From Oikopleura dioica (lineage: Eukaryota > Animalia > Chordata): a DNA stretch of 64,000 bases. The DNA is taken from the NCBI GenBank assembly GCA_907165135.1, contig CAJRAX010000009.1, positions 1-64,000 on the forward strand, written 5' to 3'. The notes below the pieces were generated by a model. That model searched no databases. It was not told the origin of the DNA and saw only the letters and a program-made list of their open reading frames with translations. Of the stretch, positions 1-30,020 are shown in pieces. Positions within the stretch are counted from its first letter, which is position 1. Every line of letters starts with the position of its first letter. The position numbers and the translations under genes are program-made.

Positions 1-238
1 CATCGTGATACCTACTGTGAAAAAAAAATATTATTACTGAAGCGCTAAATCACGGCCAAAGATAAAAGCATGATCTCACAAATTAACAATAAATAACTGG
101 TCAGGTTTGATCGGACCTCGTCAAAAATCAAAAAATTTAGCCAAACCGGAAAAAATGAAAAAAATAGGTTTGCTGATTAGACTGAGGGTAATTTCTAGCA
201 TGAGAACGCTAGGAAATTCTGATTACTATATTTTCCGC

Positions 239-281
239 ACGTACGCGTGTATTCACATGTTCTGAGGCACATTAGCCACCC
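239..281 (+). promoter_or_regulatory. Conserved LTR boxes ACGTACGCGT and GGCACATTAGCCACCC (candidate U3 promoter elements)
   Basis: Same two boxes 16-17 nt apart in the otherwise divergent family-2 LTR (10858-10899); related boxes in most other LTRs. Promoter role is inferred from position only. Confidence 0.45.
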
Positions 282-469
282 TTTTGATATCTTTGATTCA
301 AAAGGTTTTTCTTAATAACTTCTTTTAGGTTCAAAGTTAAAACGCATGAATTTATCTCACAATAATTTCTTTAATTTATATTTCTGCTTTTTCAAAAATT
401 CAATCTTTTCAAAATATTTTACATTTACTGGACGATGATTCTTCTCAACGCCGTTGGAATAAATAATTC

Positions 470-563
470 TTACTGGCTGAGCTTCCCGAAAGGGCTAAAC
501 GCTAAGTTACCGCGGGCAGAATATCCCAAACCGGTAAAAAGCGTTATAAGCGCTCCCAGGTAA
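470..563 (+). ncRNA. Putative structured cis-RNA (three-way junction) in family-1 LTR; second copy at 8154-8247
   Basis: CTGG-ct-GAGC/GCTC-CCAG, CCC-GAAA-GGG, AACGCT/AGCGTT, junction ATAAGC; pairing preserved by compensatory changes in the other families. Function unknown. Confidence 0.65.
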
Positions 564-1221
564 TCGAACTCGCCGAGGACTCGGTTACTGCATTTTCTAG
601 AAAACTGACCACTTTCAACGCCGCAGTTACACGCCGACCCGACTAGGACGACAACGACAACTTCGACTACTACCACAACGACAACGAAACCCCTGCCTGG
701 ACTGACAACGGACTACTGACAACAACAACGACTACTGCCCTGGAACTTTGTCGGAATCTGTAGTTAAACAGTGGGTCACATAGTGAGAAAGCTGTTTGAT
801 TACAAATTTCGTCAAAAAGCGCCACTTATGGCGAATTTATTAAAAATAAGAATTCTCAAAAGAAATCGTAACATGTTATATAATTATCTAAGAATTGACG
901 TTACGTAAAAAGATGATGAAAGTTTGCAAATAACGCGTTACGTAAGAAGCCACAATGGCCGAAATGGCCCGATTTACGAAAACAATAGAAAAATCCGGAA
1001 CCAACCGGTTTCTGAAAAGAAACTTTTCAAAATTTCAAATTTCAAAAATCATTCTCGATTATCAATAAAACCACCAACAGCTATTTTTATTTTCGTTTCT
1101 TTTGCAAGGATTCTAGTTTATTGAATTTGGTATCAGTGATGACCACAGAGGACGAATCCCAAGAAGCGAAGCCGATCATAATGGCAAAAGTAAGTCAGCT
1201 CCATTTCCCGAGGAAATTTTA

Positions 1222-2397
1222 ATGGCCAGCCTTTCCCCTTTATCTGGGTCGCAATTAATTTCACCGACTATTCAATTATATCAGTTTCAATTGTATATAA
1301 GCATTCTCGAAGATAGGTTGTGTCAGTTTAGTGCTCTTTTTGAACGAAGTCTGAAGGACTTTTCTCGAACGGAGGACTCGGATTTAAAAGCTCAGTTTCA
1401 GCGAAAACTTATTAATTGCATTCGTAGCTCTTGCTCTGAAGATTTTCTCGCGCAATACGGTCGGGATTTGGCTAATGAGACGTGCTATAAAAAGGCACTT
1501 GAATTTTTAAAAGAAATTTTTGGCGAGGAAACTGAAACAGACAAGAAAATGCGGGCAACGAACGAGTTCGAAAATTTGGTCCGAAGGACTGATTTAAATG
1601 AAAAATTTGTTTCCTTTTTGAGACGAATCAAATCACTTGCCCAATTGATCGATCATCGAAAGGACGCGGTTGATTTTCTTGTGGAAAATAAATTTAAGAA
1701 ATTTCTAGAGCCCGCCAATTTGAGCTTTTTGCGGGACCATAAGATGCAAAATTCGAGTGCGGATGAAATAGCGAAATTTTTAGATGAAAGGGAGAGACAC
1801 TGTCTTGCCCAAGTTTCTGCGGTCAATACTGATCGTATGAATTCATTTATTGATCAAACCTCCGAAATGTTGTCGAGGCAACTTGAGGCATTTAACGAGA
1901 GTAATAAAAAGAGTCAGGAGGCTCACGAGAAAAAGAATGAGGAATTGTCGAAAGCTCTGAAAGATTTGACAGCGACTGTTAATGAGCTGAAATTAGAAAA
2001 GCAGCAGAAGCCTGAAAGTAACTCTTTTACGAACAAAAACTTTTCGCGAGAGCAAAATTTTCGACAAAATGATTTTTCACCATCACAAAATCCTCAAAAT
2101 TTTCGTCCGCCGAATTTTTTTACTCCGCCTGGATTTCCTCAGCATTTTCAGAATTTAGGATCACCTAGAAATTTTCAAATCCCACAGAATCGCCCCGTTT
2201 TGTTTTGCTCAGAGTGCGGTAAATTTGGACACATGAAGCGAAATTGCCGATTTATTGAATGTCACGGTTGTGGTCAAAAAGGACACATTCAGCGTTTCTG
2301 TCCAAGATATCATAATCAACCTGGCCAAAATAATAATCGTGAGAATAGAAATTTTCCTCCCTTTTCGCGTGGTTCGGGAAACGGGTATTCGGGTTGA
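1222..2397 (+). CDS. gag: Gag polyprotein of element 1
   Basis: Two CX2CX4HX4C knuckles (CSECGKFGHMKRNC, CHGCGQKGHIQRFC). The homologous copy at 57426 indicates the true start is ATG 1139, out of frame here because of a 1-nt difference near 1186. Confidence 0.9.
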   Translation: MASLSPLSGSQLISPTIQLYQFQLYISILEDRLCQFSALFERSLKDFSRTEDSDLKAQFQRKLINCIRSSCSEDFLAQYGRDLANETCYKKALEFLKEIFGEETETDKKMRATNEFENLVRRTDLNEKFVSFLRRIKSLAQLIDHRKDAVDFLVENKFKKFLEPANLSFLRDHKMQNSSADEIAKFLDERERHCLAQVSAVNTDRMNSFIDQTSEMLSRQLEAFNESNKKSQEAHEKKNEELSKALKDLTATVNELKLEKQQKPESNSFTNKNFSREQNFRQNDFSPSQNPQNFRPPNFFTPPGFPQHFQNLGSPRNFQIPQNRPVLFCSECGKFGHMKRNCRFIECHGCGQKGHIQRFCPRYHNQPGQNNNRENRNFPPFSRGSGNGYSG

Positions 2398-2421
2398 GCC
2401 CTGGTCAGGCTTTCAATCCGG
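2376..2421 (+). promoter_or_regulatory. -1 ribosomal frameshift signal (G_GGA_AAC plus downstream stem-loop)
   Basis: Heptamer 2376-2382 is in the gag frame; pol is in the -1 frame; CGGGTTGA/TCAATCCG stem starts ~7 nt downstream. Confidence 0.85.
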
Positions 2422-2689
2422 AAACCTTCGTTAGCTCTGTAAAAAGTTTAGGTCGTCAACATTTTATCGATGCTCACATTTTTAATAAAACCATAAAATT
2501 GATGATTGATACAGGCTCACAGATAAATCTTATTGGACGTGAGTTTGTTCCTGAGTCTGAAAAAATATATAAAAATGATTTAAAAATATTCGCGTATAAT
2601 AATACTGTTGTTCCTGTTATTGGATATATTGAAACGGATTTGATAATTAGTGGACAAAATTGGGGTCGCGCGCGATTCTATGTTGTTAA

Positions 2690-3215
2690 CCTTAGCCCGC
2701 CAAGGTACACCACAACTCGGGAATCGGACAAGTATTTGTTCACTGCGCTGGACGTTTAAATTTTTTTTGAAAACTAAGGATACGCTGAGACGGCTTGATC
2801 GATTATCTATCGTTTTAGGGATTTTAGACCTGTTTCTGATTGACCTTAGCGCCGGTAGACCCTTATTTTTGCGAAAAGTCCATGCACCATATATGGTGTC
2901 GAGCTTCAATTGTTGATGCACCATATATGGTGTTTTTGGCGGGTACCCCAGCTTTTTCCCAGCGATTTTGCCGAAAATTCACTCTGGTCAGCTTCTCTGA
3001 TCCTCAATTTATGAACTTCTCTGAGAGAATTTTCGAATAGATGAACCCTAGTATCATCATTGGAACACTATTATTGAACAAAATAACTATTTTCTAGCAA
3101 AGATTTTTAAAAATATCATGATAAACGTGATATGGTGTCGAGCTACAATGGAAGATGCACCATATATGGTGTTTTTGGCGGGTACCCCAGAAAATCCACT
3201 TTTGGCGGGCTAAGG
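2690..3215. mobile_element. piggyBac-type non-autonomous element (MITE), 526 bp
   Basis: Perfect 14-bp TIR CCTTAGCCCGCCAA/TTGGCGGGCTAAGG; TTAA duplicated at 2686-2689 and 3216-3219; internal direct repeats containing the palindrome CACCATATATGGTG; no transposase. Confidence 0.92.
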
Positions 3216-6200
3216 TTAATGATAGATTAAATTGTATTCTTGGGACTTCCTCTATTGAAGAGCTTGAACTGGTTATTAATCTTCACCGTAAAAAATTGAT
3301 AAAGGGCGGTCCAATCGAACGACTCGCAAATATATCAGAAATAAAAGTTGAATCAGAATCTTCCGAAAATGAACAGTTTGAAGGAATTCTTATGGATACC
3401 ATAACATTTAAACCGAAAACGGAACAATTAGTTGATTTACATGTGAGAAACTTAAAAAAACTTTCGCCGTTATTTTTTGAAAACTCGTCCCTCAAAAATT
3501 GCAAATTAGAGTTTCTTCCGTCTCTCCAAGAAGTTTCCCCTGACTCGCCTATTTTTCGCGTTCTTATTCTTAACATGACAGATTCCTCAATAAAAATTGA
3601 AAAAGGAACAAAGCTTGTAGAGCTTTTTGAAGTTTGTAGAGTTGGTCAGATAAAAGAAAAGGCAGTCAAAGAGATTCTGAAAAAGATAAAAGTCGGCCCG
3701 ATGTCGAGTGAAATGGAACCAAAATTTTATGAATTAATGGAAGAATTTTCATATTTGTTATTGGAAGAGGGGGATTATATACCTGCTTGCTCAATTGCAG
3801 AATTTAGCATAGATACGATTGATTCGACTCCCACCGTTTCTCAGCCCTATAGAACAGCTTTCGCTTTACGCCAGACAATGAGAGATATTCTTGATAATTA
3901 CCTCGAAAATCGAGTTATTGAGCCTTGTATATCGGTATGGAATTCTCCGTGCTTATTGGTTAGAAAAAAAGGAGGAACTTGGCGCCTAGTTATTGATTAC
4001 AGAAAATTGAATCTTAATACTCACCAGTTTCATTACCCCTTGCCGTCACTTGAAGATTCGATTTCACACATGCAAAAAAGTAAAATTTTTAGTTGCTGTG
4101 ATCTCTACAAGGGGTTTCATCAAGTGAGCATTAACCCGGAATCGGCAGACAAAACAGCATTTTCGTGTGAGCATGGGCAATTTAGATTTTTAAGGATGCC
4201 GATGGGTTTAAAAAATTCCCCATGTTTTTTTATGCTTATCATGGACAAAGCCTTAGAAAAAATCCCCAAATCAGCTGTTCTGGCTTACATGGATGATGTT
4301 TGCGTGCATAGCGTTTCAGAGGCCGATCATTTGATTAATTTGCGAAAATTTTTTATGGCGTTAGCGGCAAATAATTTAAGATTGAATGCAAAAAAGTGCA
4401 GTTTTTTCGAGAGATCAATCGATTTTTGTGGATATAATATTTGTCAAGGGAAAATTTAGCCATCAAAAGCTAGAATTGAATCAATAAAAAATTTAAGGGA
4501 GCCTCAAAACAAAACTGAGGCAATGTCAATCTTCGGAATGTTAAATTATCACAGAAGATTCATTAAAGATTTTGCGGAAAAAGCTAAAGCAATAACAAAT
4601 TCTTACAAAGGTCAATTTTCATGGGATTATCAAGCTAGAAAAGCATTTGAAAATTTAAAAGAAGAAATAACAGAAAATGCCCTCGAATTATCAATTGCAC
4701 CTATTCAAGGTGGAAGATTAGTATTAGAAACAGATGCGAGCTCTAGCGGTTATGGGGGGGTCTTATATCTTTGCGAGGAGAAAAATGTTACTGACAGTCA
4801 TTTACATGGGGAACGGTGCCTTCGGCCTGTCGCGTATAATTCAGGAAATTTTACAGATGCTCAACTAAAATACATAATTCTAGAAAAAGAAATGCTTAGC
4901 GCTAAATTGTCGATGGAAAAATGGTCTGTTTATTTAAAATTTCAAAAATTCGATTTGATAACTGACAATTCAAATCTTAAGTATATTCAGTCTTTTCGAA
5001 CTAATAACAATAGATTACAGCGCTGGATATCAGATATTATGGCTTTTGATTTTAGGATTATACTCAAATCGTCGTCACAAATGAAAGTTTCTGATTGTTT
5101 GTCACGATTAACGAAAGTGTCTCAGATAAAAAGTGCGGAATCAAATTTTGCGGATATCCAAAAGCTTGACCCTGATCTTAAACTCATCATGAATTACACA
5201 AAACTTAATAGATGGCCGAATATTCCACCGCCAAAATTAATGCCGTTTTTGGTTCATCGAAATGATTTCTTTTTTCTTGATTCAGGAGAATTAGCAATTC
5301 GCTCAGCTGACAAATCATTTAGAATATGTGTTCCAGAAATTAAAGTAAATGAAATAATTGCAAGGTATCATAATGATTGTCATGACGGTATTGATATCAC
5401 GTATTCTAAAATCATTCGAAAGTATTACTGGAAAAATATGAAAACATCAATAACAGATTATATAAAAACATGCTTTTATTGCCAGTCTAGGAAACCTAAT
5501 AATCACCCTAACCGAGCTCCAATAAAAACTTTTGCTACTCCTACTGGACCGTATCAAGCAATGGGATTCGATCTCATTGGACCTCTCAGGCCTACAGATT
5601 TAGAGATGATTTACATTTTTACCGCGGTTGATTTTTTTTCGAAGAAAGTTTATGCCGAGCCTCTTAATTCTAAAAAATCTGAATATTTACTAGGTAAATT
5701 TAAAAATATGATTTTTCGTAATCCAATTTTTCCACAATTTTGCTTGTTTGATAATGCCCCCGAATTTACGAAAATAAAATCATTCTGTGAATCTCATAAT
5801 ATTAAATTTAATCAATCTCCTCCTCGGCATCCATCAACAAATGGAGCAGTCGAAAACATTAATAGAACTCTGAAAGCTAGGCTTCGTGGAAAATGTGACA
5901 TGATCAATTGGGATAACTGTTTAAATGAGGTTCTCCACTCAATCAATAGCTCGGTTCATTCTGTCACCAAACTGTCCCCTTTTACTATTGAAACAGGCAT
6001 TAAAAATCCTCAATTTATTGATGATTTGAATTGGAGACAGATAGAAGATAAAATTGATGTTAAATTTAGCGATATAAAAGAAAGGATCGATCTTGAAAAA
6101 AAAGTAAGATGCGAAAAAACTGAGAATCCAAATTTTAGGGAATTTCACATTAATGACAAGGTGCTGATAAAAAATTTTCGCTCAAAATTTCCTCCCTTTA

Positions 6201-7682
6201 TTGGCCCAATGACCATTATTGAAAAGCATTTGACAGTATACACGTGTAAAGACAATGAATCGGACCGAACTTATAAACGCCACGCTAATGATCTACGGAT
6301 CTTTAATGAACGAAAAGAAACTATTGAAAATGAAGATCTTAATTCATTCGATGAGCCCGAAAAGACTTTAATCAGGGAGACAGACTCGGGGTTTTCTGAA
6401 GTTTTATTTTCATGTGACTCAATTTTCGGAAGTTCTTCGCAATTTGAAATTTATGAGCAGATAAATCATAATTTCCAGATAGACTCAATTTTAAATGTTC
6501 AATCAGAGGCAAATAGTGACATAGATTTATCCTTACAAGAAAATTTTCCCGAAGAAGTAATGTCTCAGACCGAGAATTCATCCATACAAAGTGATAATAT
6601 TATGCCTGATAAAAATAACGCCGAGAATATTTCTGAACAAGACTCTTCGGAGGAAGTTCACAGTTTAGCGGCAGATTTTGATGAAGACGAAAATATTAAT
6701 GCGTCTGACGTTATACAGGGAAATAATATCAACAAATCTGACTCTGAGTCGAGCTCGTCGGAGGAACTTCTGATTTTAGCTGGAAACACAGAGCAAAAAA
6801 ATGACACAAAATCTTTGGATAATGCATCGTTAAATGTCCATCTGACTGATTATTCCGATCTTCAAATAACTGAAAATTACCCACCTATTCCCCAACAATC
6901 CAATAAGCGTAGATATAATTTTTCTAGCGATTCTGATTCAGATATGCGGGAAGACAAAATATTAGTTAAAGACCCCTTAGTATTAGCCAAAAATTTTGCC
7001 TCGGGAAATCAACTGGAGAAAGAAATTTCTGTCAAGAATAAATCGGCTTCGCCTTCTATTCCTGATGTCAGTTTTGCTGAGTTTTTTCCAAAATTAGATA
7101 ACAGCATCAATGATCACCAAATGATTGATTTTGAAGATTTAAAATTCACAGTGATTCTTGAAAACAAAAACGAAAACCTTTTTACTAAAATTGACAATTC
7201 AGCCTTAATTTATGAAAAAAACACTATTATCGAGACAGCTTGCGTTTTAAAGCAATCAGAGCTACCTAAAGACGCAATTTTATTAATTTGTAGGGAATTA
7301 AAAATACATCACACGCCAGCTGAAAAGATGGCAGAATTGAATATAAAAATAAAGAATTGGTTAATCGAGAATCAGCCGAAATGGCACAAAGGAAGCTCGG
7401 GAGAGTACTTGTTTCTTTGCAATCTTTTATTGAGAAGAAATTTTACTCTCTCGGAATTTCGAGCCCCTGAGCTTAAATGTCTGGCATCTTTTTATTCATT
7501 GCAAAAAATAAGTTTTACTTCCAGATCTGTTTTCTCTGAGTACATAATTAGTGAATTTTCTGAACGTTTTCCTAATCACCCTCTCAAAAATCGCGAACTT
7601 CTCTTTGGCCCAGACATTTGAGTTTAGAAATTATTTTCAGTAACATAAAGGAATATTCAAATGACCCCTGGTGCGGGCATAG

Positions 7683-8819
7683 TGATACCTACTGTGAAAA
7701 AAAAAAATATTATTACTGAAGCGCTAAATCACGGCCAAAGATAAAAGCATGATCTCACAAATTAACAATAAATAACTGGTCAGGTTTGATCGGACCTCGT
7801 CAAAAATCAAAAAAAATTTAGCCAAACCGGAAAAAATGAAAAAAAAAATAGGTTTGCTGATTAGACTGAGGGTAATTTCTAGCATGAGAACGCTAGGAAA
7901 TTCTGATTACTATATTTTCCGCACGTACGCGTGTATTCACATGTTCTGAGGCACATTAGCCACCCTTTTGATATCTTTGATTCAAAAGGTTTTTCTTAAT
8001 AACTTCTTTTAGGTTCAAAGTTAAAACGCATGAATTTATCTCACAATAATTTCTTTAATTTATATTTCTGCTTTTTCAAAAATTCAATCTTTTCAAAATA
8101 TTTTACATTTACTGGACGATGATTCTTCTCAACGCCGTTGGAATAAATAATTCTTACTGGCTGAGCTTCCCGAAAGGGCTAAACGCTAAGTTACCGCGGG
8201 CAGAATATCCAAAACCGGTAAAAAGCGTTATAAGCGCTCCCAGGTAATCGAACTCGCCGAGGACTCGGTTACTGCATTTTCTAGAAAACTGACCACTTTC
8301 AACGCCGCAGTTACACGCCGACCCGACTAGGACGACAACGACAACTTCGACTACTACCACAACGACAACGAAACCCCTGCCTGGACTGACAACGGACTAC
8401 TGACAACAACAACGACTACTGCCCTGGAACTTTGTCGGAATCTGTAGTTAAACAGTGGGTCACATAGTGAGAAAGCTGTTTGATTACAAATTTCGTCAAA
8501 AAGCGCCACTTATGGCGAATTTATTAAAAATAAGAATTCTCAAAAGAAATCGTAACATGTTATATAATTATCTAAGAATTGACGTTACGTAAAAAGATGA
8601 TGAAAGTTTGCAAATAACGCGTTACGTAAGAAGCCACAATGGCCGAAATGGCCCGATTTACGAAAACAATAGAAAAATCCGGAACCAACCGGTTTCTGAA
8701 AAGAAACTTTTCAAAATTTCAAATTTCAAAAATCATTCTCGATTATCAATAAAACCACCAACAGCTATTTTTATTTTCGTTTCTTTTGCAAGGATTCTAG
8801 TTTATTGAATTTGGTATCA
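7683..8819 (+). repeat. 3' LTR of element 1
   Basis: Direct repeat of 6-1135, followed by TSD CATCG. Confidence 0.96.
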
Positions 8820-10679
8820 CATCGTTATCATGAATCGCCCAAAAACGAGGTCAAAATTTTGAAATTTCGTTTTTTTGCCCTTATTTTATTTGCAGCGTTT
8901 CTGACGTCTTCCGAGCGTCATTTTGGTTGATTCTGAGCCTCTCAAACCCAACAGAAAAAAAATTCAAAAAAAAAATTTTTTTTTCGATGGTCATCGTTAT
9001 CATAAATCGCCCAAAAACGAGGTCAAAATTTTGAAATTTCGTTATTTGGTCTAATTTTATTTGCAGCGTTTTTGCCGTATTCCGAGCGTCATTTTGGTTG
9101 ATTCTAAGCCTCTCAAACCCAACAGAAAAAAAATTCAAAAAAAATTTTTTTTTCGATGGTCATCGTTATCATGAATTGCCCAAAAATGAGGTCAAAATTT
9201 TGAAAATTCGTTTTTTTGCTCTAATTTTATTTGCAGCGTTTCTGTCGTCTTCCGAGCGTCATTTTGGTCGATTCTGAGCCTCTCAAACCCAACAGAAAAA
9301 AAATTCAAAAAAAAAATTTTTTTTTCGATGGTCATCGTTATCATAAATCGCCCAAAAACGAGGTCAAAATTTTGAAATTTCGTTATTTGGTCTAATTTTA
9401 TTTGCAGCGTTTCTGCCGTATTCCGAGCGTCATTTTGGTTGATTCTGAGCCTCTCAAACCCAACAGAAAAAAAATTCAAAAAAAATTTTTTTTTCGATGG
9501 TCATCGTTATCATGAATTGCCCAAAAATGAGGTCAAAATTTTGAAAATTCGTTTTTTGCTCTAATTTTATTTGCAGCGTTTCTGTCGTCTTCCGAGCGTC
9601 ATTTTGGTCGATTCTGAGCCTCTCAAACCCAACAGAAAAAAAAATTCAAAAAAAAAATTTTTTTTTCGATGGTCATCGTTATCATAAATCGCCCAAAAAC
9701 GAGGTCAAAATTTTGAAATTTCGTTATTTGGTCTAATTTTATTTGCAGCGTTTTTGCCGTATTCCGAGCGTCATTTTGGTTGATTCTAAGCCTCTCAAAC
9801 CCAACAGAAAAAAAATTCAAAAAAAATTTTTTTTTCGATGGTCATCGTTATCATGAATTGCCCAAAAATGAGGTCAAAATTTTGAAAATTCGTTTTTTGC
9901 TCTAATTTTATTTGCAGCGTTTCTGTCGTCTTACGAGCGTCATTTTGGTCGATTCTGAGCCTCTCAAACCCAACAGAAAAAAAATTCAAAAAAAAAATTT
10001 TTTTTTCGATGGTCATCGCTATCATGAATCGCCCAAAAACGAGGTCAAAATTTTGAAAGTTCGTTTTTTGCCCTTATTTTATTTGCAGCGTTTCTGTCGT
10101 CTTCCGAGCGTCATTTTGGTCGATTCTGAGCCTCTCAAACCCAACAGAAAAAAAAATTCAAAAAATTTTTTTCGATGGTCATCGTTATCATAAATCGCCC
10201 AAAAACGAGGTCAAAATTTTGAAATTTCGTTATTTGGTCTAATTTTATTTGCAGCGTTTTTGCCGTATTCCGAGCGTCATTTTGGTTGATTCTAAGCCTC
10301 TCAAACCCAACAGAAAAAAAATTCAAAAAAAATTTTTTTTTCGATGGTCATCGTTATCATGAATTGCCCAAAAATGAGGTCAAAATTTTGAAAATTCGTT
10401 TTTTGCTCTAATTTTATTTGCAGCGTTTCTGTCGTCTTCCGAGCGTCATTTTGGTCGATTCTGAGCCTCTCAAACCCAACAGAAAAAAAATTCAAAAAAT
10501 TTTTTTCGATGGTCATCGTTATCATGAATCGCCCAAAAACGAGGTCAAAATTTTGAAAGTTCGTTTTTTGCCCTTATTGTATTTGCAGCGTTTCTGCCGT
10601 CTTCCGAGCGTCATTTTGGTTGATTCTGAGCCTCTCAAACCCAACAGAAAAAATTCAAAAAATTTTTTTCGATGGTCAT
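8820..10679 (+). repeat. Satellite A array, ~11 monomers of ~165-172 bp
   Basis: Unit GATGGTCATCGTTATCATGAATCGCCCAAAAACGAGG...GAGCCTCTCAAACCCAACAGAAAAAAAATTCAAAAAAAATTTTTTTC recurs at 8820, 8992, 9161, 9333 etc. Confidence 0.98.
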
Positions 10680-18433: not shown

Positions 18434-19741
18434 GTCATCGTTATCATGAATCGCCCAAAAACGAGATCAAAGTTTTGAAATTTCGTTTTTTGCCCTTATT
18501 TTATTTGCAGCGTTTTTGCCGTCTTCCGAGCGTCATTTTGGGTGATTCTGAGCCTCTCAAACCCAACAGAAAAAAAATTCAAAAAAAAAAAAATTTTTTT
18601 TCGATGGTCATCGTTATCATGAATCGCCCAAAAACGAGGTCAAAATTTTTAAAATTCGTTTTTTGCCCTTATTTTATTTGCAGCGTTTCTGCCCACTTCC
18701 GAGCGTCATTTTGGTTGATTCTGAGCCTCTCAAACCCAACAGAAAAAAAATTCAAAAAAAAAAAATTTTTTTTTCGATGGTCATCGTAATCATGAATCGC
18801 CCAAAAACGAGGTCAAAATTTTGAAATTTCGTTTTTGCCCTTATTTTATTTGCAGCGTTTCTGCCGTCTTCCGAGCGTCATTTTGGTTGATTCTAAGCCT
18901 CTCAAACCCAACAGAAAAAAAATTCAAAAAAAAAATTTTTTTTTCGATAGTCATCGTTATCATGAATCGCCCAAAAACGAGGTCAAAATTTTGAAAATTC
19001 GTTTTTTGCTCTTATTTTATTTGCAGCGTTTCTGCCGTCTTCCGAGCGTCATTTTGGTTGATTCTAAGCCTCTCAAATCCAACAGAAAAAAAATTCAAAA
19101 AAAAAAAATTTTTTTTCGATGGTCATCGTTATCATGAATCGCCCAAAAACGAGGTCAAAATTTTGAAAATTCGTTTTTTGCCCTTATTTTATTTGCAGCG
19201 TTTCTGCCGTCTTCCGAGCGTCATTTTGGTTGATTCTGAGCCTCTCAAACTCAACAGAAAAAAAATTCAAAAAAAAAAATTTTTTTTCGATGGTCATCGT
19301 TATCATGAATCGCCCAAAAACGAGGTCAAAATTTTGAAAGTTCGTTTTTTGCCCTTATTTTATTTGCAGCGTTTTCCGTCTTCCGAGCGTCATTTTGGTT
19401 GATTCTGAGCCTCTCAAACCCAACAGAAAAAACCCAAAAAAATATTTTTCGATGGTCATCGTTATCATGAATCGCCCAAAAATGAGGTCAAAATTTTGAA
19501 ATTTCGTTTTTGCCCTTATTTTATTTGCAGCGTTTCTGCCGTCTTCCGAGCGTCATTTTGATTGATTCTTAGCCTCTCAAACCCAACAGAAAAAATTCAA
19601 AAAAATTTTTTTCGATGGTCATCGTTATCATGAATCGCCCAAAAACGAGGTCAAAATTTTGAAAGTTCGTTTTTTGCCCTTATTTTATTTGCAGCGTTTC
19701 TGCCGTCTTCCGAGCGTCATTTTGGTTGATTCTGAGCTTCT
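18434..19741 (+). repeat. Satellite A array, ~8 monomers
   Basis: Same unit as 8820-10679. Confidence 0.98.
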
Positions 19742-21034
19742 TGATACGGAAGCGGCTGTCCTGCAGGAATTTTGCTCGATCTCTAACTCTAGAATGCCAA
19801 GCGAAAATAACGAGAATCAAATTTAAAATTTGCGTGGTTTTATTTGTGATTTGAATGCCGGAAAAAGGCGCGACGCGGGGTTAAATAGCAGCGAGATTCA
19901 ATCAGTGTTTTTGAACAAGCGGTTGTTTTTGAAAAACAATTTTTCTTTTGAAAACAAGGAAAAGAGCCCGTGGCTTTCTTTAGCGGTTTTCTTGCGGGAA
20001 ATCCTTTCGGATCGATTTCTTTTCGGATGATGAGCTGGTCGAACTTGCCAAGCAAGTTATTTTCAAAGGATTTTGAAGCCGGCGCCGCGCGTGACGAGAT
20101 AAAACGCAAATTAATTTTTTTTGATAATAAAAAGCAGAAAATAATAACAGCCACTAAAACTTCTCACTATGTGACCGTAGAAGTGACTGTTAATTAGGAT
20201 TGAAAAATATAAAAGGATGAGAAAAGAAAAAGAATATGTACAAAATTTTAACAAATAAATTGAATAAAATTTGGTCAGGATTTTATAAAATAAATTTATC
20301 AAAATTGAAATCATAGAAGAAGCAAATTCCAAGGAACATACCCGGGGGAAGTTACTGTCGCGGTTCGCACCGTATCTTCTCTTACGGATGAGCTAGTTTG
20401 CGACAAGCGGACGCACTGACAGAGAGTTTGTCCGACCCCACGGCACCGAGATGATACGACGGTTTATCGGCTCGTTGGAGTAGTTGTTGTTGAAGAAGGT
20501 GTTGACGGCTATCTTGTTGTAGAAGTTGAATCGTATGAACTGTCAATAATCGAACTTTTAAAATCGCAAAGCAATGATAAGAAATATCAATAAATAGATT
20601 AAACATGCGGTTTTGCGAATTGCATATTTTTGATGAATGGACGTCAGATCGCACTAGAATAGTCAGAAACAAATTAAGATTTTTTCCAAAGTATGCGTAC
20701 ATACACATTAATCCTAGACTGAATAAACCCTTAATTAATTTCCGACCCGTTGACTATGATGAGAGCATATGAGCATTCCAATGATAAAAGTAGAAATCGT
20801 AAAGAGATGACATGATGATAACACAATTTTGGGTCAATCTGGCTCGTAAAAACTGACCATCTTTTCATTTTGAGAAGAATATCGTGAAATGATTTTTGGA
20901 AAAATGTCTGATCAATTTGGTGATACCAAGCTGACAAGACAAATTTAAACTAACGTAGAACCGAATTGACGTAAATATTTGGCCGTGAAATAAATTTTTT
21001 GTGTTGCTTGAGGCGTTGTTCCCGAAGGATATCA
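19742..21034 (-). mobile_element. Solo LTR (family 4), 1293 bp
   Basis: TGATA...TATCA ends; TSD CTTCT at 19737-19741 and 21035-21039; carries the shared GGTCACATAGTGAGAA motif (20164-20174) and the three-way-junction motif (20342-20443) on the minus strand; no coding remnant. Confidence 0.88.
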
Positions 21035-23381
21035 CTTCTCAAACCCAACAGAAAAAAAATTCAAAAAAAAAATTTTTTTTTCGATGTTCATCGTTATCAT
21101 GAATCGCCCAAAAATGAGGTCAAAATTTTGAAAGTTTGTTTTTTGCCCTTATTTTATTTGCAGCGTTTCTGCCGTCTTCCGAGCGTCATTTTGGTTGATT
21201 CTGAGTCTCTCAAACCCAACAGAAAAAAAATTCAAAAAAAAAATTTTTTTTCGATGGTCATTGTTATCATGAATCGCCCAAAAACGAGGTCAAAATTTTG
21301 AAAGTTCGTTTTTTGCCCTTATTTTATTTGCAGCGTTTTTGCCGTCTTCCGAGCGTCATTTTGGTTGATTCTGAGCCTCTCAAACCCAACAGAAAAAATT
21401 CAAAAAATTTTTCGATGGTCATTGTTATCATGAATCGCCCAAAAACGAGGTCAAAATTTTGAAAGTTCGTTTTTGCCCTTATTTTATTTGCAGCGTTTTT
21501 GCCGTCTTCCGAGCGTCATTTTGGTTGATTCTGAGCCTCTCAAACCCAACAGAAAAAATTCAAAAAAATTTTTCGATGGTCATTGTTATCATGAATCGCC
21601 CAAAAACGAGGTCAAAATTTTGAAAGTTTGTTTTTTGCCCTTATTTTATTTGCAGCGTTTTTGCCGTCTTCCGAGCGTCATTTTGATTGATTCTTAGCCT
21701 CTCAAACCCAACAGAAAAAAATTCAAAAAAATTTTTTTCGATGGTCATCGTTATCATGAATCGCCCAAAAACGAGGTCAAAATTTTGAAAGTTCGTTTTT
21801 GCCCTTATTTTATTTGCAGCGTTTCTGCCGTCTTCCGAGCGTCATTTTGGTTGATTCTGAGCTTCTCAAACCCAACAGAAAAAATTCAAAAAAATTTTTT
21901 CGATGTTCATCGTTATCATGAATCGCCCAAAAATGAGGTCAAAATTTTGAAAGTTTGTTTTTGCCCTTATTTTATTTGCAGCGTTTCTGCCGTCTTCCGA
22001 GCGTCATTTTGGTTGATTCTGAGCCTCTCAAACCCAACAGAAAAAAATTCAAAAAATTTTTTCGATGGTCATTGTTATCATGAATCGCCCAAAAACGAGG
22101 TCAAAATTTTGAAAGTTCGTTTTTTGCCCTTATTTTATTTGCAGCGTTTTTGCCGTCTTCCGAGCGTCATTTTGGTTGATTCTGAGCCTCTCAAACCCAA
22201 CAGAAAAAAATTCAAAAAAAAAATTTTTTTTCGATGGTCATTGTTATCATGAATCGCCCAAAAACGAGGTCAAAATTTTGAAAGTTTGTTTTTGCCCTTA
22301 TTTTATTTGCAGCGTTTTTGCCGTCTTCCGAGCGTCATTTTGGTTGATTCTGAGCCTCTCAAACCCAACAGAAAAAAATTCAAAAAATTTTTTCGATGGT
22401 CATTGTTATCATGAATCGCCCAAAAACGAGGTCAAAATTTTGAAAGTTTGTTTTTGCCCTTATTTTATTTGCAGCGTTTTTGCCGTCTTCCGAGCGTCAT
22501 TTTGATTGATTCTTAGCCTCTCAAACCCAACAGAAAAAAAATTCAAAAAATTTTTTTTTCGATGGTCATCGTTATCATGAATCGCCCAAAAACGAGGTCA
22601 AAATTTTGAAAGTTCGTTTTTGCCCTTATTTTATTTGCAGCGTTTCTGCCGTCTTCCGAGCGTCATTTTGGTTGATTCTGAGCTTCTCAAACCCAACAGA
22701 AAAAATTCAAAAAAATTTTTCGATGTTCATCGTTATCATGAATCGCCCAAAAATGAGGTCAAAATTTTGAAAGTTTGTTTTTGCCCTTATTTTATTTGCA
22801 GCGTTTCTGCCGTCTTCCGAGCGTCATTTTGGTTGATTCTGAGCCTCTCAAACCCAACAGAAAAAAAATTCAAAAAAAAAATTTTTTTTCGATGGTCATT
22901 GTTATCATGAATCGCCCAAAAACGAGGTCAAAATTTTGAAAGTTCGTTTTTTGCCCTTATTTTATTTGCAGCGTTTTTGCCGTCTTCCGAGCGTCATTTT
23001 GGTTGATTCTGAGCCTCTCAAACCCAACAGAAAAAATTCAAAAAAATTTTTCGATGGTCATTGTTATCATGAATCGCCCAAAAACGAGGTCAAAATTTTG
23101 AAAGTTTGTTTTTGCCCTTATTTTATTTGCAGCGTTTTTGCCGTCTTCCGAGCGTCATTTTGGTTGATTCTGAGCCTCTCAAACCCAACAGAAAAAAATT
23201 CAAAAAAATTTTTCGATGGTCATTGTTATCATGAATTGCCCAAAAACGAGGTCAAAATTTTGAAAGTTTGTTTTTTGCCCTTATTTTATTTGCAGCGTTT
23301 CTGCCGTCTTCCGAGCGTCATTTTGGTTGATTCTGAGCCTCTCAAACCCAACAGAAAAAATCAAAAAAATTTTTCGATGGT
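21035..23381 (+). repeat. Satellite A array, ~14 monomers with a 5-monomer (~820 bp) higher-order repeat
   Basis: The GATGTTCATC variant recurs at about 21083, 21902 and 22722, each followed by three GGTCATTG monomers and one GGTCATCG monomer. Confidence 0.95.
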
Positions 23382-23641
23382 TGATACCGAAAGGGATGAT
23401 TCTCTAAGCTAATCTGCAACTTGCAAAGGAAACAATTAAAAATTCAGGAATCGACGCTATTTTATTTGGTAAGATCGAGAATGATTTTCGAATTTCAAAT
23501 TTTCAAATTTCAATTCCGCGCAGATGGTAAAATTTCCAAATAAGGGCATTTCGCCAAGTATTTCGCGGATGTTTTGATTTTGCGCGGCGCATTTCGCGCT
23601 CTTGTTTTTCTCGTTGTTTTCTTCATTTTCGCCGCAGTGAT

Positions 23642-24826
23642 TGATACGATTCCTGCTTATTTTCTCAAAACGATTCTTGCTATAAAATACTAAAAATTTA
23701 TTTGCTGTTGGTGATTTATTGAAAGATCAAGAATGAGGATCAATTTTTGAAAATGGAGAAGGTCAAGTTTTGCCAACCGGTTTGCGCTGGATTTCCATTG
23801 TTAAGAAGTCATGGCGCCATTTACGTCAATTGTCTTTCGCATTATGTAACTTTCTGATGAAATTTTTCATTTTCAATTTATCCAAAGGCAAAATAGCCAT
23901 TATATAATTTTCATAATCTTCGTTATGTAACCCCAATGATTGTGGTTACATAATTTTCGTCTTTTCAAATTTCATTTTTTTGTATTTTTCTTTGCCACAG
24001 CTGGCGCATTTTCTTGAAATCACTCTCAAAACCGGCTTTCTCACTATGTGACCCACCGATTGTGAAAGTATTTCTGGGTTTCCAAAGCCGTTAAGCAAAT
24101 CGTAGTCGTTCCAAGCGTTTTTATCGTTGTCCAAAGTGTTGTAGAAGTAGAAGTCGTCGTTGTCTCTGCCATCGGCTCGTTGTGTAGTTGCCATCTTTGT
24201 TTTTTGGTCAGAAAATTTAAAAAAGCAGCCGTAACGGGCTCGACAGTTTTGATTACCATGTCGCGCTTATGTTCGCGGTTGGCCATATTGAGATATTCTG
24301 CTCCAGGCTACTTTGCGAACAGCCACTTTCGTGGAAGCGAAGCATGTAAGGATGATAGGTCCCAACGTCGTCGAAATCAAGGAAGAAAAGCAGCAGTCGT
24401 TCCCCAGCGGTTCGTTGATTTTTATGACAGAAACAAATATTTTTCAGATAAAATTTTCCTAAGAATTTCTTATACTTTTATTTACAATCAACACTGTAAA
24501 TAAAGGCATAGATATATGTGATTTTTAACGTTTTAACGATCATCCTTTTCATGCAATAATAAATTGATGTGATACACGCGTACGTGCAGAATATGCGAAC
24601 TAAAATCCTAACCAGTAATTATTTTGTAAAAGCCCTTGAACCCTTAATTTTCCTTTGATTAAATTAGCAAAAAACTTTACCCACTTAGTTAAGGGCCCAA
24701 GGGAAAATCAATATGGCTCTTATTGATTTTTCTTTGATTAACATGCACTATGGGCTTTTATATTTGAGCAACATTTTTATTCATTTTTTTGTATTTTGAT
24801 TTTTGTTATTTATTCGGAAGGTATCA
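23642..24826 (-). repeat. 3' LTR of element 3
   Basis: TGATAC...GTATCA; matches 27768-28896 except for homopolymer indels; three-way-junction motif at 24253-24349 (copy at 28322-28418). Confidence 0.93.
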
Positions 24827-24893
24827 CCATGGCCACGCCAGGGTCTTAAATGAGCATCTTTTGCCTTCGAATATTTGAAGCCCTAGAACGAGC

Positions 24894-27767
24894 TCAAGTG
24901 TCCGGATAAAAAACAAGTTCACCGTTTTTTGTCGGATGATTTGGAAAGAAAGAGGAAAACTGAGCGATAATAAATTCACGAATGTTTGATTTTTTGTTAA
25001 TAAATGAGTTTGGAATTTTTCAAGAGAATAAAAAGAGCAAAGACACTTGAGCTCGTATAAAGAAAACTGCGGAAGAGTTGTTTCTCTTTTTATTTGCAAA
25101 ATAGCTAGAAAAAGCAACTCTCCCGAGCTTGATTTTTGCCAATTATTGTGATTCTTGATAATCCAAAATTTCACTTTATTACCTAATTCGGATTTGTTAT
25201 CTGAAGCAGAATGCGTTTCGCCAAAATCAGCGAGGATCGATATCAATGTTTCTTTCGGCAGTTCAGACATTTTCAGAATAAACCCATTACCGATTTTCTT
25301 ATTCTTTTTAAAATCATGCAACCCCTGCCTAACTTCGTTAAAAAATTTTCATTTTTGTTTTCCAAAATTATTCCAATCTGGCAACCTTCAAAATCAAGCA
25401 TTTCTGCTTCATTCATTAATTCGTTTGTTCTTGTTTTTGGTAATCGAACGGAGCTGTTCGTTATTTCCGAGTCCATTAAAATTGTTCTATCGATTTGTTG
25501 TCGAGTTTGTACTGTTTTATCTGTTGTTTTTGGGTGAAAAAGGGCCTTTTAAAATCTTGAATGTCAGACAATTCTCCAGAGCTTCCCCTCGCGCGTTTTG
25601 CATTTCTATTAGCACTTATATCAAGTTTGTCATATGATGTTAAGTCGCCCGAAAATTCAATCTGACGAACCGTTTGATTTCTACAAGGTAATATTGCCGA
25701 TGAACCCGCTACTATCTCCAGGTCCTCCGTTGAGGTCTCGTCGAAAATGTCATCTTTCCCGCTGATTTCCCTTACATTTTGAATATTGGCCTGATCAGTT
25801 TGTCGGATTCCCTTAACCTCGAGATAAGCCTCTTTAAAAATATCAATTATATTTAAATTAATTAAATTTTCGTAATCCCTTAAAACGAGAGAATTTTTGA
25901 ATTCCTCAATGTCTAAACTATCGGAGCTCGATTCGGTTATTGATGATTCTAAATCCGAAAATGAATCTTTACGCAATTCTAACTTCGATTGCTCTTCAGC
26001 TGTGACGGAGAAAAACTCAACATATCTAAACCCCTCAATTGAATTTTTATCCTCGTGCCCATCCCTTACTATTTCATTATTATCATGCTCTATTTTTGGA
26101 GAGATTTTATCTTGGCGCTCATGAAATTTTCTTAAGTCGTTCGCGTGGCGAATTAGAATTTTCCTGTCTCTAAATTTTTACAAGAATACACCGTAGGGGT
26201 TTTATTAATAATTATGTAGGGGCCAATAAATGGGGGTCGTTTGATCGAAAATTTCTTAGCAAGACTTTTTCATTGAGGGCGTATTCTTGAAATTTTTCAT
26301 TTTTGAGCCTTGCGCATCTCCGAGATTTTTCTTCATCAATATTGTGTTTAATTGCTTTAAAATCAATATTTATTTTATCCCTATACTGTCTCCAATTGGG
26401 GTCATTCAAAAAGTGTGGAACCTCGATTCCTGTTTCAATTGAAAACGGAGAAAATTTTGTGACTGAATGCTTAGAACTATTTATTTCGTGAAGAGTTTCC
26501 GAAAGATAACGGTCCCAATTATTAAACTGACATCGGGCTTTAAGCCGGCTCTTAAGAGTTCGATTAAAATTTTCGACACTACCATTAGTTGCTGGATGTC
26601 TTGGTGGACTGTTTTTAAGTTCAATATTATTTTCCGCACAAAATTCACGAATTTTTGAAAATTCAGGGGCGTTATCGAAAATTAACAACTTGGGAAAGAA
26701 AGGGTTTGAAAAAGAATAGACTTAAATTTATCGAGGAGATATTCTGATTTTTAGAATTAAGTGGTACCCCATAAGCTTTTTGCTGAAAAAATCAATAGCA
26801 GTAAAAATATAAATATTCCCACTGTCCGTTGGCCGAAGAGGACCGATCATATCAAAGCCCATTTGTTGATACGGCCCTGTTGGAGATGGAAATGTCTTTG
26901 GGGCGGCTTTATTCGGATTACAGTTTGGTTTATTTAATTGACAGTATTTGCATGATCTAATAAACTCGACTACATCTTGGCGCATTTTCCCAAAAATACT
27001 TTTGATTTAATTTTGAAAATGTAATTTCTATTCCAGAGTGACCCCCTTCATGATATTCACGCATAAGGTCAGAACGCAAAACTTCTGGAACGCAGAATTT
27101 GTCTAGATTCCCTTCCCTTAGGATAAGCTCCCCTGATTCGAGAAAACATAAATTTTTCCGGTGCAATAAATAATATGAAATTTTTTCCGTCGGATTATTC
27201 GGCCATCTGTCAATTCCGACGTATTGTCTTATAAGCCGTAAGATCGGGTCAAGTTTTGAAGCTCAATAAAATTTTGGTATCAATTTTGATAAGAGAAATT
27301 GCCGCTTTTTCGGTTTTCCCGGGTATCTTGAGAGATAATCTGAAATTTTAAGCGCACTTGATGGTTTCTGGAGAATTTTATAATTAAAGGTCATAAGCTC
27401 AGCTATCCATCTTTGAATACGGGAATTATTTGTTTTTAGCGAATTGAGATATTTCATATTTCCATTGTCTGTTATAAGATCAAAATTTGTATATTTCAGA
27501 TAGACGCTCCACTTATTTATGCAAATTCTAGAAGCCAAAATTTCTTTTTCAAAAATCGTATACTTGATCTGTGTGTCAGAAAAATTACCACTGTGATATG
27601 CGCATGGCCGTAGACAGCCGGAATTATGAACATGGTTTTCAGATGGAATCTTTTCCGCGCATAAATATAGAACTCCTCCGAAACTCCGATCGCTTGCATC
27701 ACACTCGACCACAAATTTACCCCCAGAAATCGGTGGAATAAATAATTCTAGAGCTTTTTCCGAGATT
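24894..27767 (-). pseudogene. pol: RNase H-integrase-C-terminal remnant of pol, element 3
   Basis: VECDAS, HEGGH..CKYC, GFDMIG, IFDNAPEF, SVENFNRTLK and the C-terminal module are spread over several frames; many breaks fall in homopolymers and may be sequencing errors. Confidence 0.9.
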
Positions 27768-28896
27768 TTTATTTGCTGTTGGTGATTTATTGAAAGATCA
27801 AGAATGAGGATCAATTTTTGAAAATGGAGAAGGTCAAGTTTTTGCCAACCGGTTTGCGCTGGATTTCCATTGTTAAGAAGTCATGGCGCCATTTACGTCA
27901 ATTGTCTTTCGCATTATGTAACTTTCTGATGAAATTTTTCATTTTCAATTTATCCAAAGGCAAAATAGCCATTATATAATTTTCATAATCTTCGTTATGT
28001 AACCCCAATGATTGTGGTTACATAATTTTCGTCTTTTCAAATTTCATTTTTTTGTATTTTCTTTGCCACAGCTGGCGCATTTTCTTGAAATCACTCTCAA
28101 AACCGGCTTTCTCACTATGTGACCCACCGATTGTGAAAGTATTTCTGGGTTTCCAAAGCCGTTAAGCAAATCGTAGTCGTTCCAAGCGTTTTTATCGTTG
28201 TCCAAAGTGTTGTAGAAGTAGAAGTCGTCGTTGTCTCTGCCATCGGCTCGTTGTGTAGTTGCCATCTTTGTTTTTGGTCAGAAAATTTAAAAAGCAGCCG
28301 TAACGGGCTCGACAGTTTTGATTACCATGTCGCGCTTATGTTCGCGGTTGGCCATATTGAGATATTCTGCTCCAGGCTACTTTGCGAACAGCCACTTTCG
28401 TGGAAGCGAAGCATGTAAGGATGATAGGTCCCAACGTCGTCGAAATCAAGGAAGAAAAGCAGCAGTCGTTCCCCAGCGGTTCGTTGATTTTTATGACAGA
28501 AACAAATATTTTCAGATAAAATTTTCCTAAGAATTTCTTATACTTTTATTTACAATCAACACTGTAAATAAAGGCATAGATATATGTGATTTTTAACGTT
28601 TTAACGATCATCCTTTTCATGCAATAATAAATTGATGTGATACACGCGTACGTGCAGAATATGCGAACTAAAATCCTAACCAGTAATTATTTTGTAAAAG
28701 CCCTTGAACCCTTAATTTTCCTTTGATTAAATTAGCAAAAACTTTACCCACTTAGTTAAGGGCCCAAGGGAAAATCAATATGGCTCTTATTGATTTTTTC
28801 TTTGATTAACATGCACTATGGGCTTTTATATTTGAGCAACATTTTTTATTCATTTTTTGTATTTTTTGATTTTTGTTATTTATTCGGAAGGTATCA
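27768..28896 (-). repeat. Truncated 5' LTR of element 3
   Basis: Identity to the 3' LTR begins at TTTATTTGCTGTTGG. Confidence 0.9.
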
Positions 28897-29685
28897 GTGA
28901 TTGTTACGCAAGAAGCAGCCGATTCCCATATCATCATTTTGACTTATCAAGAGATCAACTTCCAACTATGTTGCCGTATCACTTTTGATAAGAAGCCGTT
29001 ATCAGTCCATGTCCAAAATCGTTGTCAGTCCGTTCGTTGTCGTTTTCGTTGATGGAGCAGTTGTCGTCGTTGTAGAACGTGCAGTTTTGTCGTTTTTAAA
29101 GATGATAGCCATTCGTCCTTAATCGAGCCAAAAAGGGTTCAAACAAAAACGCCTACCAGGAGCAGTTACTGACAGCGCCATCCCGCGGAGCACGGGGTCA
29201 CACTGTCAAGCCGCAAAAGCGGAACTCAGCTGGGGATGAATATTCATACAAATGGTCCAGGGTGAAATCAAGGAAGAATCCGTCGTTTTTTAGCTTTTCC
29301 AGGTTGAAGCTTGAGAATCGTTTTAAACAGCAAAATAAGAAGGGATTAATTTGAACTAGAAAGAGAATTTAGAACTAAAATGAATTGAGAGTTGTTTCCA
29401 ATAGAAAAGGGTTGAATATTCATGCGTTCCTAAAAGAGTGAGATTTTAACGCCCGAAGACGGTTGGCTAATGTGCCTAAAATGAAGTGAAATAGCGCGTA
29501 CGCTACAGAGAATAAGAGGGATTATGATGAACTCATGCTGGCGATTCATGAAATCGGCTCAAGATTTCAAGTTTTACATTCGATTTGTGAAAGATTCAAA
29601 AATCTATCCGAGTTAGCGTAATTTGGCCGTGATTGAAGGATAATTCAATTTTTATTTTTTATGTTCTTCTGCCGTATCGATATTA

Positions 29686-30020
29686 ATGGTCATCGTTATC
29701 ATGAATCGCCCAAAAATGAGGTCAAAATTTTGAAAATTCGTTTTTTGCTCTTATTTTATTTGCAGCGTTTCTGTCGTCTTCCGAGCGTCATTTTGGTTGA
29801 TTCTTAGCCTCTCAAACCCAACAGAAAAAAAATTCAAAAAAATTTTTCGATGGTCATCGTTATCATGAATCGCCCAAAAACGAGGTCAAAATTTTGAAAT
29901 TTCGTTTTTGCCCTTATTTTATTTGCAGCGTTTCTGCCGTCTTCCGAGCGTCATTTTGGTTGATTCTGAGCCTCTCAAACCCAACAGAGAAAAATTCAAA
30001 AAAATTTTTTCGATGGTCAT
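29686..30020 (+). repeat. Satellite A, 2 monomers
   Basis: Same unit as above. Confidence 0.95.

Follow-up and report, generated by a model that had tools for sequence, protein, structure and literature searches.

Ty3/gypsy retrotransposons of Oikopleura dioica cluster at family-specific sites within the monomer of a subtelomeric satellite

Described systems of targeted integration

Targeted integration of long terminal repeat (LTR) retrotransposons is already known from Ty3, Ty5, Tf1, the chromoviruses, and Tal1. Ty3 targets TFIIIB at Pol III starts, Tf1 is directed to Sap1 sites, and Ty5 to Sir4 heterochromatin at telomeres. The TRAS and SART elements of telomeric repeats, as well as the R1 and R2 elements of ribosomal DNA, use a sequence-specific endonuclease and target-primed reverse transcription. 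Integration of the Arabidopsis lyrata element Tal1, according to the main text of its description, follows CENH3 chromatin (Tsukahara et al. 2025, PMC11735389); the phrases 'position within' and 'within the repeat' have no match in that main text, so preference for one place inside the monomer is apparently not reported there. The present analysis concerns a clade of Ty3/gypsy elements in the tunicate Oikopleura dioica and their insertion into a satellite, satA, in a stretch of 64,000 nucleotides at the start of contig CAJRAX010000009.1 (assembly GCA_907165135.1). This whole stretch, C14:1-64000 in the contig numbering used below, is referred to as the window; the assembly has 19 contigs and 64,281,565 bases, of which contig C5 holds 16,158,756.

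The same host carries the Tor elements, which Henriet et al. (2015, PMC4402516) describe as Ty3/gypsy-like, in part env-bearing, present as young polymorphic copies, and flanked by duplications 4 or 5 bases long. By this description, the clade studied here shares with Tor the Ty3/gypsy-like gene order, near-identical LTRs, short duplications, recent activity, and the host, and is probably of the Tor type, although in its intact representative, element 2, there is no space left for an env gene. A term search of the Tor text returned no mention of tandem repeats, of satellite or within-monomer targeting, or of an integrase tail domain. Literature searches, whose coverage is incomplete and no proof of absence, returned no report of within-monomer targeting in Oikopleura dioica or of a SAP-type integrase tail.

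As in Ty3, Tf1, and Ty5, integration here is integrase-mediated, leaves a short duplication, and takes place a few base pairs from a fixed landmark; Ty5 also favours chromosome ends, by way of a motif at the C-terminus of its integrase. The landmark in the present case, however, is a position in a tandem satellite unit, diverged families share one stretch of it with offsets of their own, and the integrase tail is predicted to be a large folded domain rather than a short motif. CRM chromoviruses and Tal1 are likewise LTR retrotransposons that prefer satellite arrays, but CRM carries a chromodomain-type integrase tail, which was not found here, and the arrays described below are subtelomeric. 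With TRAS, SART, R1, and R2 the clade shares the repeated use of the same base-pair position in a repeat unit, and with TRAS and SART also the chromosome ends. It differs from them in bearing the marks of an integrase, namely LTRs and exact 5-bp duplications.

Clustering of insertions within the satA monomer

Within the satA monomer, insertions of the clade cluster in one short stretch. The clustering is found genome-wide and is independent of segmental duplications. The satellite has a unit of 162-172 bp and occupies positions 8820-10679, 18434-19741, 21037-23381, and 29686-30020 of the window (Tandem Repeats Finder). Positions within the monomer refer to a 170-nt consensus of 31 monomers, rotated to begin with the G of GCAGCGTTTC. 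On this scale, an A/T tract of ~29 bases ends at position 92, and the stretch in which insertions cluster, referred to below as the hot stretch, follows directly after it. An earlier reading of the letters of the window alone (the sequence-only reading) had placed the cluster in a 14-mer that corresponds to positions 91-104.

That reading had claimed that four of five insertions into satA share this stretch, that a fifth lies outside it, and that several families and both orientations are involved; all five junctions, read directly, are as it described. Element 1 (6..8819, plus strand) is a full-length Ty3/gypsy element with LTRs 99.2% identical. The contig begins with its left target site duplication (TSD) CATCG (1..5, plus strand, monomer 100-104), and although the element had been taken as truncated there, the TSD is readable on both sides, at 1-5 and 8820-8824, with the LTR starting at base 6. 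The start of this LTR recurs in a solo-LTR paralog on C5, and a junction-spanning query finds the junction genome-wide only in the window and in this paralog, hence a single event. The right CATCG forms the first five bases of a satA array of ~11 monomers (8820..10679, plus strand), which is followed by element 2 (10680..18433, plus strand). This intact Ty3/gypsy element comprises gag at 11647-12774, pol at 12999-17342, and LTRs of ~1030 bp that are 99.6% identical, and its TSD is GTCAT (10675-10679 and 18434-18438, monomer 98-102). After a further satA array (18434..19741, plus strand) comes the insertion outside the hot stretch, a 1293-bp solo LTR of family X (19742..21034, minus strand), with the TSD CTTCT at 19737-19741 and 21035-21039, monomer 47-51.

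Beyond the next array (21035..23381, plus strand, ~14 monomers) lies a solo LTR of the TA family (23382..29685, minus strand). It is split at 23641/23642, as the sequence-only reading had correctly recognized: a single 1049-bp LTR, taken from a full element on C4, aligns with both of its pieces (23382-23641 and 28897-29685) at 94%, and ATGGT flanks the split LTR on both sides (23377-23381 and 29686-29690, monomer 95-99). Between the pieces lies a nested, internally deleted Ty3/gypsy element of ~5.3 kb (23642..28896, no strand assigned), with the TSD GTGAT at 23637-23641 and 28897-28901 and LTR copies 99.0% identical. The last array consists of two monomers with GTCAT at its end (29686..30020, plus strand), and this GTCAT (monomer 98-102) is the left flank of element 5 (30021..37312, plus strand), a relative of element 2 with broken reading frames. 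Element 5 has no matching duplication because its far end abuts a second satellite, satB. Flanks from two different satellites suggest recombination between two elements, and element 5 is probably a recombinant. Relative to the monomer as written, elements 1, 2, and 5 lie in sense and the split LTR in antisense. Taken alone, four of five insertions in one stretch are weak evidence.

The local sample comprised, besides the window, the rest of C14, C4:1-150 kb, and 30 kb of C5, ~200 kb of satellite-bearing DNA. Blocks of satA were mapped by BLAST against a consensus trimer, each interruption was curated, and duplications that restore a continuous monomer were searched for. Comparison of 500-bp flanks exposed duplicates, and each duplicated event was counted once. 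This applied to the mirrored events of C14 and C5 described below, among them the junctions of element 2 (flanks 99.8% identical), to one family X insertion (TCTTC) found three times in inverted duplicated blocks of C4 (flanks 99.8-100% identical), and to one family X solo LTR found three times with a common flank variant; a pair of junctions on C1 has a common flank variant as well. After de-duplication, there were 18 independent LTR insertions and one DNA transposon. The TSDs of the 18 start at positions 4, 16, 47, 95, 95, 98, 98, 98, 99, 100, 101, 104, 104, 104, 111, 111, 125, and 163, and 11 of them fall in 95-104 (10-position scan window; 0 of 20,000 uniform simulations as high, p<5e-5). 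Among the 13 events new to the sequence-only reading, seven overlap its 14-mer (binomial p=1.4e-4; scan p=1.5e-4). When eight array breaks that lack a clean duplication (inversions, deletions, other inserts) are scored as misses, p is still 3e-5. The families differ: outside family X, 10 of 12 events lie in the hot stretch (Rayleigh p=1e-4), whereas the six satA events of family X are spread out (TSD starts 16, 47, 104, 111, 111, and 163; Rayleigh p=0.85).

Inverted (palindromic) segmental duplications of satA with family X insertions occupy C4:28500-53000 and 132000-136500, and the strand of satA flips at their symmetry points. The block C14:1-30 kb, from element 1 through the satA arrays, element 2, the family X solo LTR, and the split LTR to element 5, is mirrored on C5:82000-110000 with the same order of events, the same junctions, and similar spacings; element 1 is represented there by a 1137-bp solo LTR. 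C14 is therefore probably either a paralog, as a recent segmental duplicate, or an unmerged haplotype. At C4:52955-52990 and C5:118656-118690, satA arrays end at a stretch of the GGTTCGGGTC type, which is reminiscent of a tRNA T-arm and may belong to a tRNA-derived SINE or another class of element; these ends have no clean duplication and were left uncounted.

Genome-wide checks used 100-nt queries spanning a junction (LTR end and flank) and exact patterns whose junction letters were read directly. The pattern for the hot stretch consists of a T-run-CGATGG anchor, 0-30 free bases, and then TGATA; a control pattern, anchored 90 bases away, covers insertion points after positions 6-35, and anchor availability is similar for both. 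Such a census detects only junctions with the left end TGATA and an unmutated anchor. The first pattern returned 24 satA junctions, of which 18 are independent, with insertion points after positions 99 (1), 102 (7), 103 (1), 104 (1), 105 (1), 108 (5), 115 (1), and 127 (1); a junction at C4:174 kb in this output is an ATCGT event. The control pattern returned three independent junctions. Sixteen events thus fall in 10 positions (after 99-108) compared with five in 50 others (two in 109-128 and three in 6-35; p=3e-9), an enrichment of ~16-fold per position. Against the uniform null that the sequence-only reading had proposed as a check, the junctions are clustered both in the local sample and in this census. 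The sample behind these figures is one assembly, Nanopore-based in repeats, with ~21-26 independent events.

Several families do share the hot stretch, as had been supposed, but it consists of family-specific discrete sites (98-102, 104-108, 95-99, and others) rather than one common site. In satA, the modal pentamer of the element 2/5 group is GTCAT (98-102), with ATCGT also used, and an additional locus with an element-2-type LTR start joined to GTCAT was found on C13 by the junction query. The TA group mostly uses GTTAT (104-108), and also ATGGT and GTCAT. A TA-type LTR end also meets the GTTAT site at C13:60.7 kb, C1:5.1 kb, and C1:24.1 kb; the identity of these ends to the query is only 80-87%. 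Other families contribute the TSDs ATGGT, TCATC, CATCG, and ATCGT. In orientation relative to satA, the element 2 group is sense in 3/3 cases and the TA group antisense in 5/5 (joint chance ~0.016). The palindrome CGATG-GT-CATCG, the only non-A/T one of the satA monomer with arms of at least 5 bp, relates two sites by symmetry: GTCAT, which sense elements use on the plus strand, and ACCAT, which antisense elements use on the minus strand.

Two peculiarities of sequence belong beside these sites. The LTR termini of the TA family are non-canonical, TA...CA, the LTR starting with TAATATCG and not with TG (window 23382-23395 and 29673-29685; locus L033:7785-7800); since this terminus is found in five copies with intact duplications, it is no sequencing slip. 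The stretch ATCGTTATCATGA of satA, monomer positions 101-113 (for example window 18437-18449), equals the junction of LTR end and LTR start of element 2 in 12/13 bases. A general mimicry of LTR-LTR junctions by the hot stretch was rejected: of the 12 elements compared, element 2 is the only one to exceed shuffles (p=0.014), and this fails correction for 12 tests.

Family X behaves differently. Its LTR end is found at ~40 loci, nearly all with different flanks, and some of them interstitial, at 5.2, 5.7, 8.9, and 14.8 Mb. A full family-X-like element (LTRs 99.9% identical, TSD CCCAG) is nested in the RNase H/reverse transcriptase (RT) region of another element at C4:19175-27455, which shows that the family does insert outside satellites. 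The dispersal of this related family indicates that other positions of the monomer are accessible and tolerated.

Tandem Repeats Finder places a second satellite, satB, with a unit of 58/59 bp, in the latter half of the window; arrays of satB are found on C14, C17, C12, C15, and C3, and at the far end of C5. On C14, four of five mappable junctions follow directly after AGATGAT and come from element-2-like, element-5-like, and third-family copies. With two further AGATGAT junctions on C17 (1.4 kb and 13.9 kb), the total is six, from at least three families. Within the window, a ~57-bp remnant of an element-2-like LTR start (37621..37677, plus strand) and another such LTR start (46353..46412, plus strand) stand directly after AGATGAT, the hot site of satB. 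The hot sites of both satellites lie 2-12 bp after a T-run, at a local maximum of pyrimidine-purine steps; in satA, no other part of the monomer is as dense in such steps, and a tract devoid of them immediately precedes the hot stretch, and the satB site is placed likewise. Sequence common to satA and satB is limited to a 15-mer with one mismatch (T-run, then CGATG; score 25, with a shuffle 95th percentile of 23). The idea that this shared box is the hot spot in both was rejected as only half borne out, the satB hot site being 14 nt off.

Further details of satB concern its arrangement. Its strand flips over a short palindromic stretch just past the end of element 5 (window 37313-37345). Degenerate satB-like sequence (window 41178-42296) separates what is left of RT and integrase in a decayed element-2-like copy. 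At C14:75870-75900, satB passes directly into satA without an intervening element, and the satellites meet within a shared CATCG/CGATG region.

Integrase tail and explanations of the site choice

Pol of element 2 has 1447 residues, with RVT_1 at 277-435, RT_RNaseH at 529-639, Integrase_H2C2 at 740-795, and rve at 812-906, and the upstream open reading frame (gag) contains zf-CCHC. The order RT-RNase H-integrase, the CCHC gag, the direct LTRs, and the short TSDs identify the element as Ty3/gypsy (Metaviridae). More than 20 related copies form at least eight families, with an RT identity to element 2 of 53%-88% (tblastn of Pol parts against the sampled DNA). In 13 full-length copies, flanked by exact 5-bp TSDs, the LTR pairs, of 1.0-1.7 kb with termini mostly TG...CA, are 99.2-100% identical, which marks the insertions as very young. 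Of ~60 genomic copies of the integrase with its tail, all but four lie at chromosome or contig ends or on small repeat contigs: they occupy C1: 6-43 kb, C4: 12-147 kb, C5: 5-118 kb and 16.07-16.15 Mb, C2: 12.88-12.93 Mb, and C3: 2.89-2.91 Mb. Contig C4 opens with ~2.4 kb of CCCTAA repeats, and its satA arrays begin at 5 kb. Because the arrays adjoin telomere repeats and the clade lies at chromosome ends, the setting is subtelomeric. The same facts leave a frame of centromere, CENH3, and CRM for the insertions unsupported. A chromodomain or CR motif was not found at the C-terminus of the integrase (Pfam search of Pol; 517 residues after the core, E<=10). The assembly paper describes retrotransposons and long-period tandem repeats in the subtelomeres, and centromeric repeats could not be identified there (PMC8008620).

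The ~517 residues after the integrase core of element 2 have no Pfam match even at E<=10, SAP (PF02037) and HeH (PF12949) included. The first and last thirds of this tail are present in all related copies (tblastn). When the last ~165 residues of 11 copies, drawn from diverse families, are aligned, 20 positions are invariant and an internal repeat is visible. In element 2, the last 167 residues (16839..17339, plus strand) form a conserved domain, predicted to consist of two helix-extended-helix units. In its AlphaFold (AF2) model (pLDDT 85, pTM 0.81), these units are packed on short strands. Weak Foldseek rows point to the SAP-like domains of MANF/CDNF, a SAP-bearing exonuclease, and the Rho N-domain. 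In a wide structural search (VIA), SAP, LEM, and HeH domains, together with SAP-bearing proteins, make up nearly half of the top 30 rows, and both halves of the model draw such rows. The halves (residues ~29-88 and 106-166) superpose on SAP, LEM, and Rho-N domains with Z of 3.2-5.3, below the noise guide of the tool, and rmsd of 1.7-3.5 over 40-50 residues. A SAP/HeH-like tail is no more than plausible. SAP domains of other proteins bind A/T-rich scaffold-attachment DNA (as also the title of PDB 1h1j states), and binding of A/T-rich DNA by a SAP-like tail would, by analogy, fit a landing site adjacent to an A/T tract.

The best reading of these results, with about an even chance of being right, is that the site is chosen by the integration machinery of the elements themselves, with the tail as candidate reader. 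The young Ty3/gypsy clade integrates by ordinary integrase chemistry, with exact 5-bp duplications, and nearly all of its insertions are in two satellites with A/T tracts, both at chromosome ends; in satA, it uses the 10-14-bp stretch that directly follows the tract. Two steps may be distinguished. The long C-terminal extension of the integrase, whose last ~165 residues form two SAP/HeH-like units in the tail model, would first capture satellite DNA regionally by its A/T tract. A local choice would then fall on the most deformable stretch beside the rigid tract, the only G/C-containing palindromic one. Binding of DNA by the tail, the feature that it reads, and the role of DNA shape in fine positioning are proposed, not observed. 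The sequence-only reading had left recognition of sequence, DNA shape, or phased nucleosomes side by side; the related family and the TSD data favour an element-encoded choice and speak against bare accessibility.

Several points weigh against this reading. For the tail, the resemblance to SAP/HeH is weak: Pfam gave no hit, Foldseek returned no match under E=1e-3, the wide structural search reached only Z<=5.3, a level that the tool itself calls common, and in the language-model Atlas SAP and HeH lead at 0.80-0.85 with low scores. Family X has this tail domain too (39-41% identity), and since the family is dispersed, the tail is not sufficient to account for fine positioning; for the same reason, presence or absence of the tail was rejected as the difference between targeted and dispersed families. 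The box shared by satA and satB is only marginally significant and misses the satB hot site. Within the element-2 group, the same physical satB site is used both ways, which leaves the orientation rules only suggestive. A DNA transposon unrelated to the LTR families also landed in the hot stretch, a single case that hints at general accessibility. All of this evidence comes, moreover, from one genome and from sequence only.

This transposon is a 906-bp element with terminal inverted repeats (TIRs; termini CAGGGTGTC..., hAT-like) at C4:139124-140029, with the 8-bp duplication GTCATCGT at satA monomer 98-105. Other copies of it are scattered on chromosome arms (C1, C4, and C5), which suggests a single chance landing or one driven by accessibility.

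The transposon is one of the observations that host chromatin would explain. If nucleosomes were phased on the 170-bp repeat by the poly(dA:dT) tract, the hot stretch would be the exposed or most bendable edge for any integration machinery. The A/T tract of ~29 bp directly before it, the peak of pyrimidine-purine step density within it, the use of the same 14 bp by several families with different pentamers, and the arrival there of a TIR element that is elsewhere dispersed on chromosome arms are all consistent with such an account. It is nonetheless unlikely, since the closely related family X inserts elsewhere in the monomer in six of six or seven cases, and exact family-specific pentamers and orientations are hard to obtain by accessibility alone. 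In addition, the 59-bp unit of satB is too short for one phased nucleosome per unit, yet its hot site is even sharper.

A bare target preference is somewhat less probable still. It would attribute the pattern to a weak, roughly palindromic taste of the R-T-S-A-Y type, by which the best site of a repeated 170-bp unit is always hit. The pentamers GTCAT, ATGAT/ATCAT (satB), and GTGAT (the nested LTR site) all fit such a taste, and the hot stretch contains the palindrome CGATG-GT-CATCG. LTR retrotransposons in general reportedly tend to insert at palindromes and in nucleosome-occupied DNA, a liking ascribed to work by Jedlicka et al. of 2019. Unlike that general bias, which is weak, genome-wide, and statistical, the enrichment here is ~16-fold per position with family-specific exact sites. 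Identical or matching pentamers speak against the preference: in the genome-wide census and its control, GTCAT was used seven times at 98-102 and never at its identical copy at 26-30 (p=0.008). No mapped insertion was found at this second GTCAT or at ATCAT (107-111), the genome-wide control scan having covered GTCAT 26-30 only. These unused copies indicate that a favoured pentamer is not enough for the clustering. The motif is also missed by roughly half of the TSDs in the hot stretch (CATCG, TCATC, GTTAT, ATGGT, and ATCGT), and the confinement of the clade to chromosome ends is left unexplained. A single R-T-S-A-Y rule for everything was consequently rejected.

Survivorship is improbable. On this account, elements insert all along the monomer, and copies outside the hot stretch soon disappear by loss or selection. 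Active removal is indeed evident from solo LTRs and truncated remnants, and for Tor, polymorphic insertions are reported and a turnover driven by strong purifying selection is proposed (PMC4402516). LTRs that are 99-100% identical in almost all mapped elements, however, leave little time for sorting, and equally young family X copies persist at other monomer positions. An artefact, in which a few insertions were copied by segmental duplication, haplotigs, or assembly errors, is very improbable: the mirrored C14 and C5 blocks, the threefold X insertion of C4, and the C1 pair show that such copying occurs, but the signal stays at p<1e-4 after removal of every duplicate, and different elements at the same site have LTR ends only 80-92% identical while their own LTR pairs are ~100% identical, which is impossible from one duplicated insertion. 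Two further ideas were discarded. Homology-driven, integrase-independent insertion does not agree with the exact 5-bp duplication of every resolved event or with the dissimilarity of satellites and elements beyond A-runs, and a derivation of the satellites from the LTRs of the elements was rejected as well.

Meaning for a compact genome

In its widest form, the choice of site by the elements themselves would mean that a tunicate Ty3/gypsy clade has evolved a direct, family-tunable reading of satellite DNA at the base-pair level, by way of a tandem SAP/HeH-like module fused to the integrase. Such a clade would act as a natural 'safe-harbour' integrase system, keeping active retroelements within the subtelomeric repeats of one of the most compact animal genomes. 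This wider proposal is tentative and less likely than not. Diverged families with intact young copies and exact sites of their own, a dispersed sister family, and a common undescribed tail form a natural comparison series, and a reading of sequence, of DNA shape, or of chromatin can be told apart directly, with short DNA substrates and cultures already in existence, in a host that is a laboratory animal with a 64-Mb genome. Targeted integration lets compact genomes tolerate active retroelements and offers a model for steering integrases to safe sites. For Oikopleura dioica itself, the subtelomeric zones of repeats and retrotransposons described in the assembly paper (PMC8008620) are organised, not haphazard.

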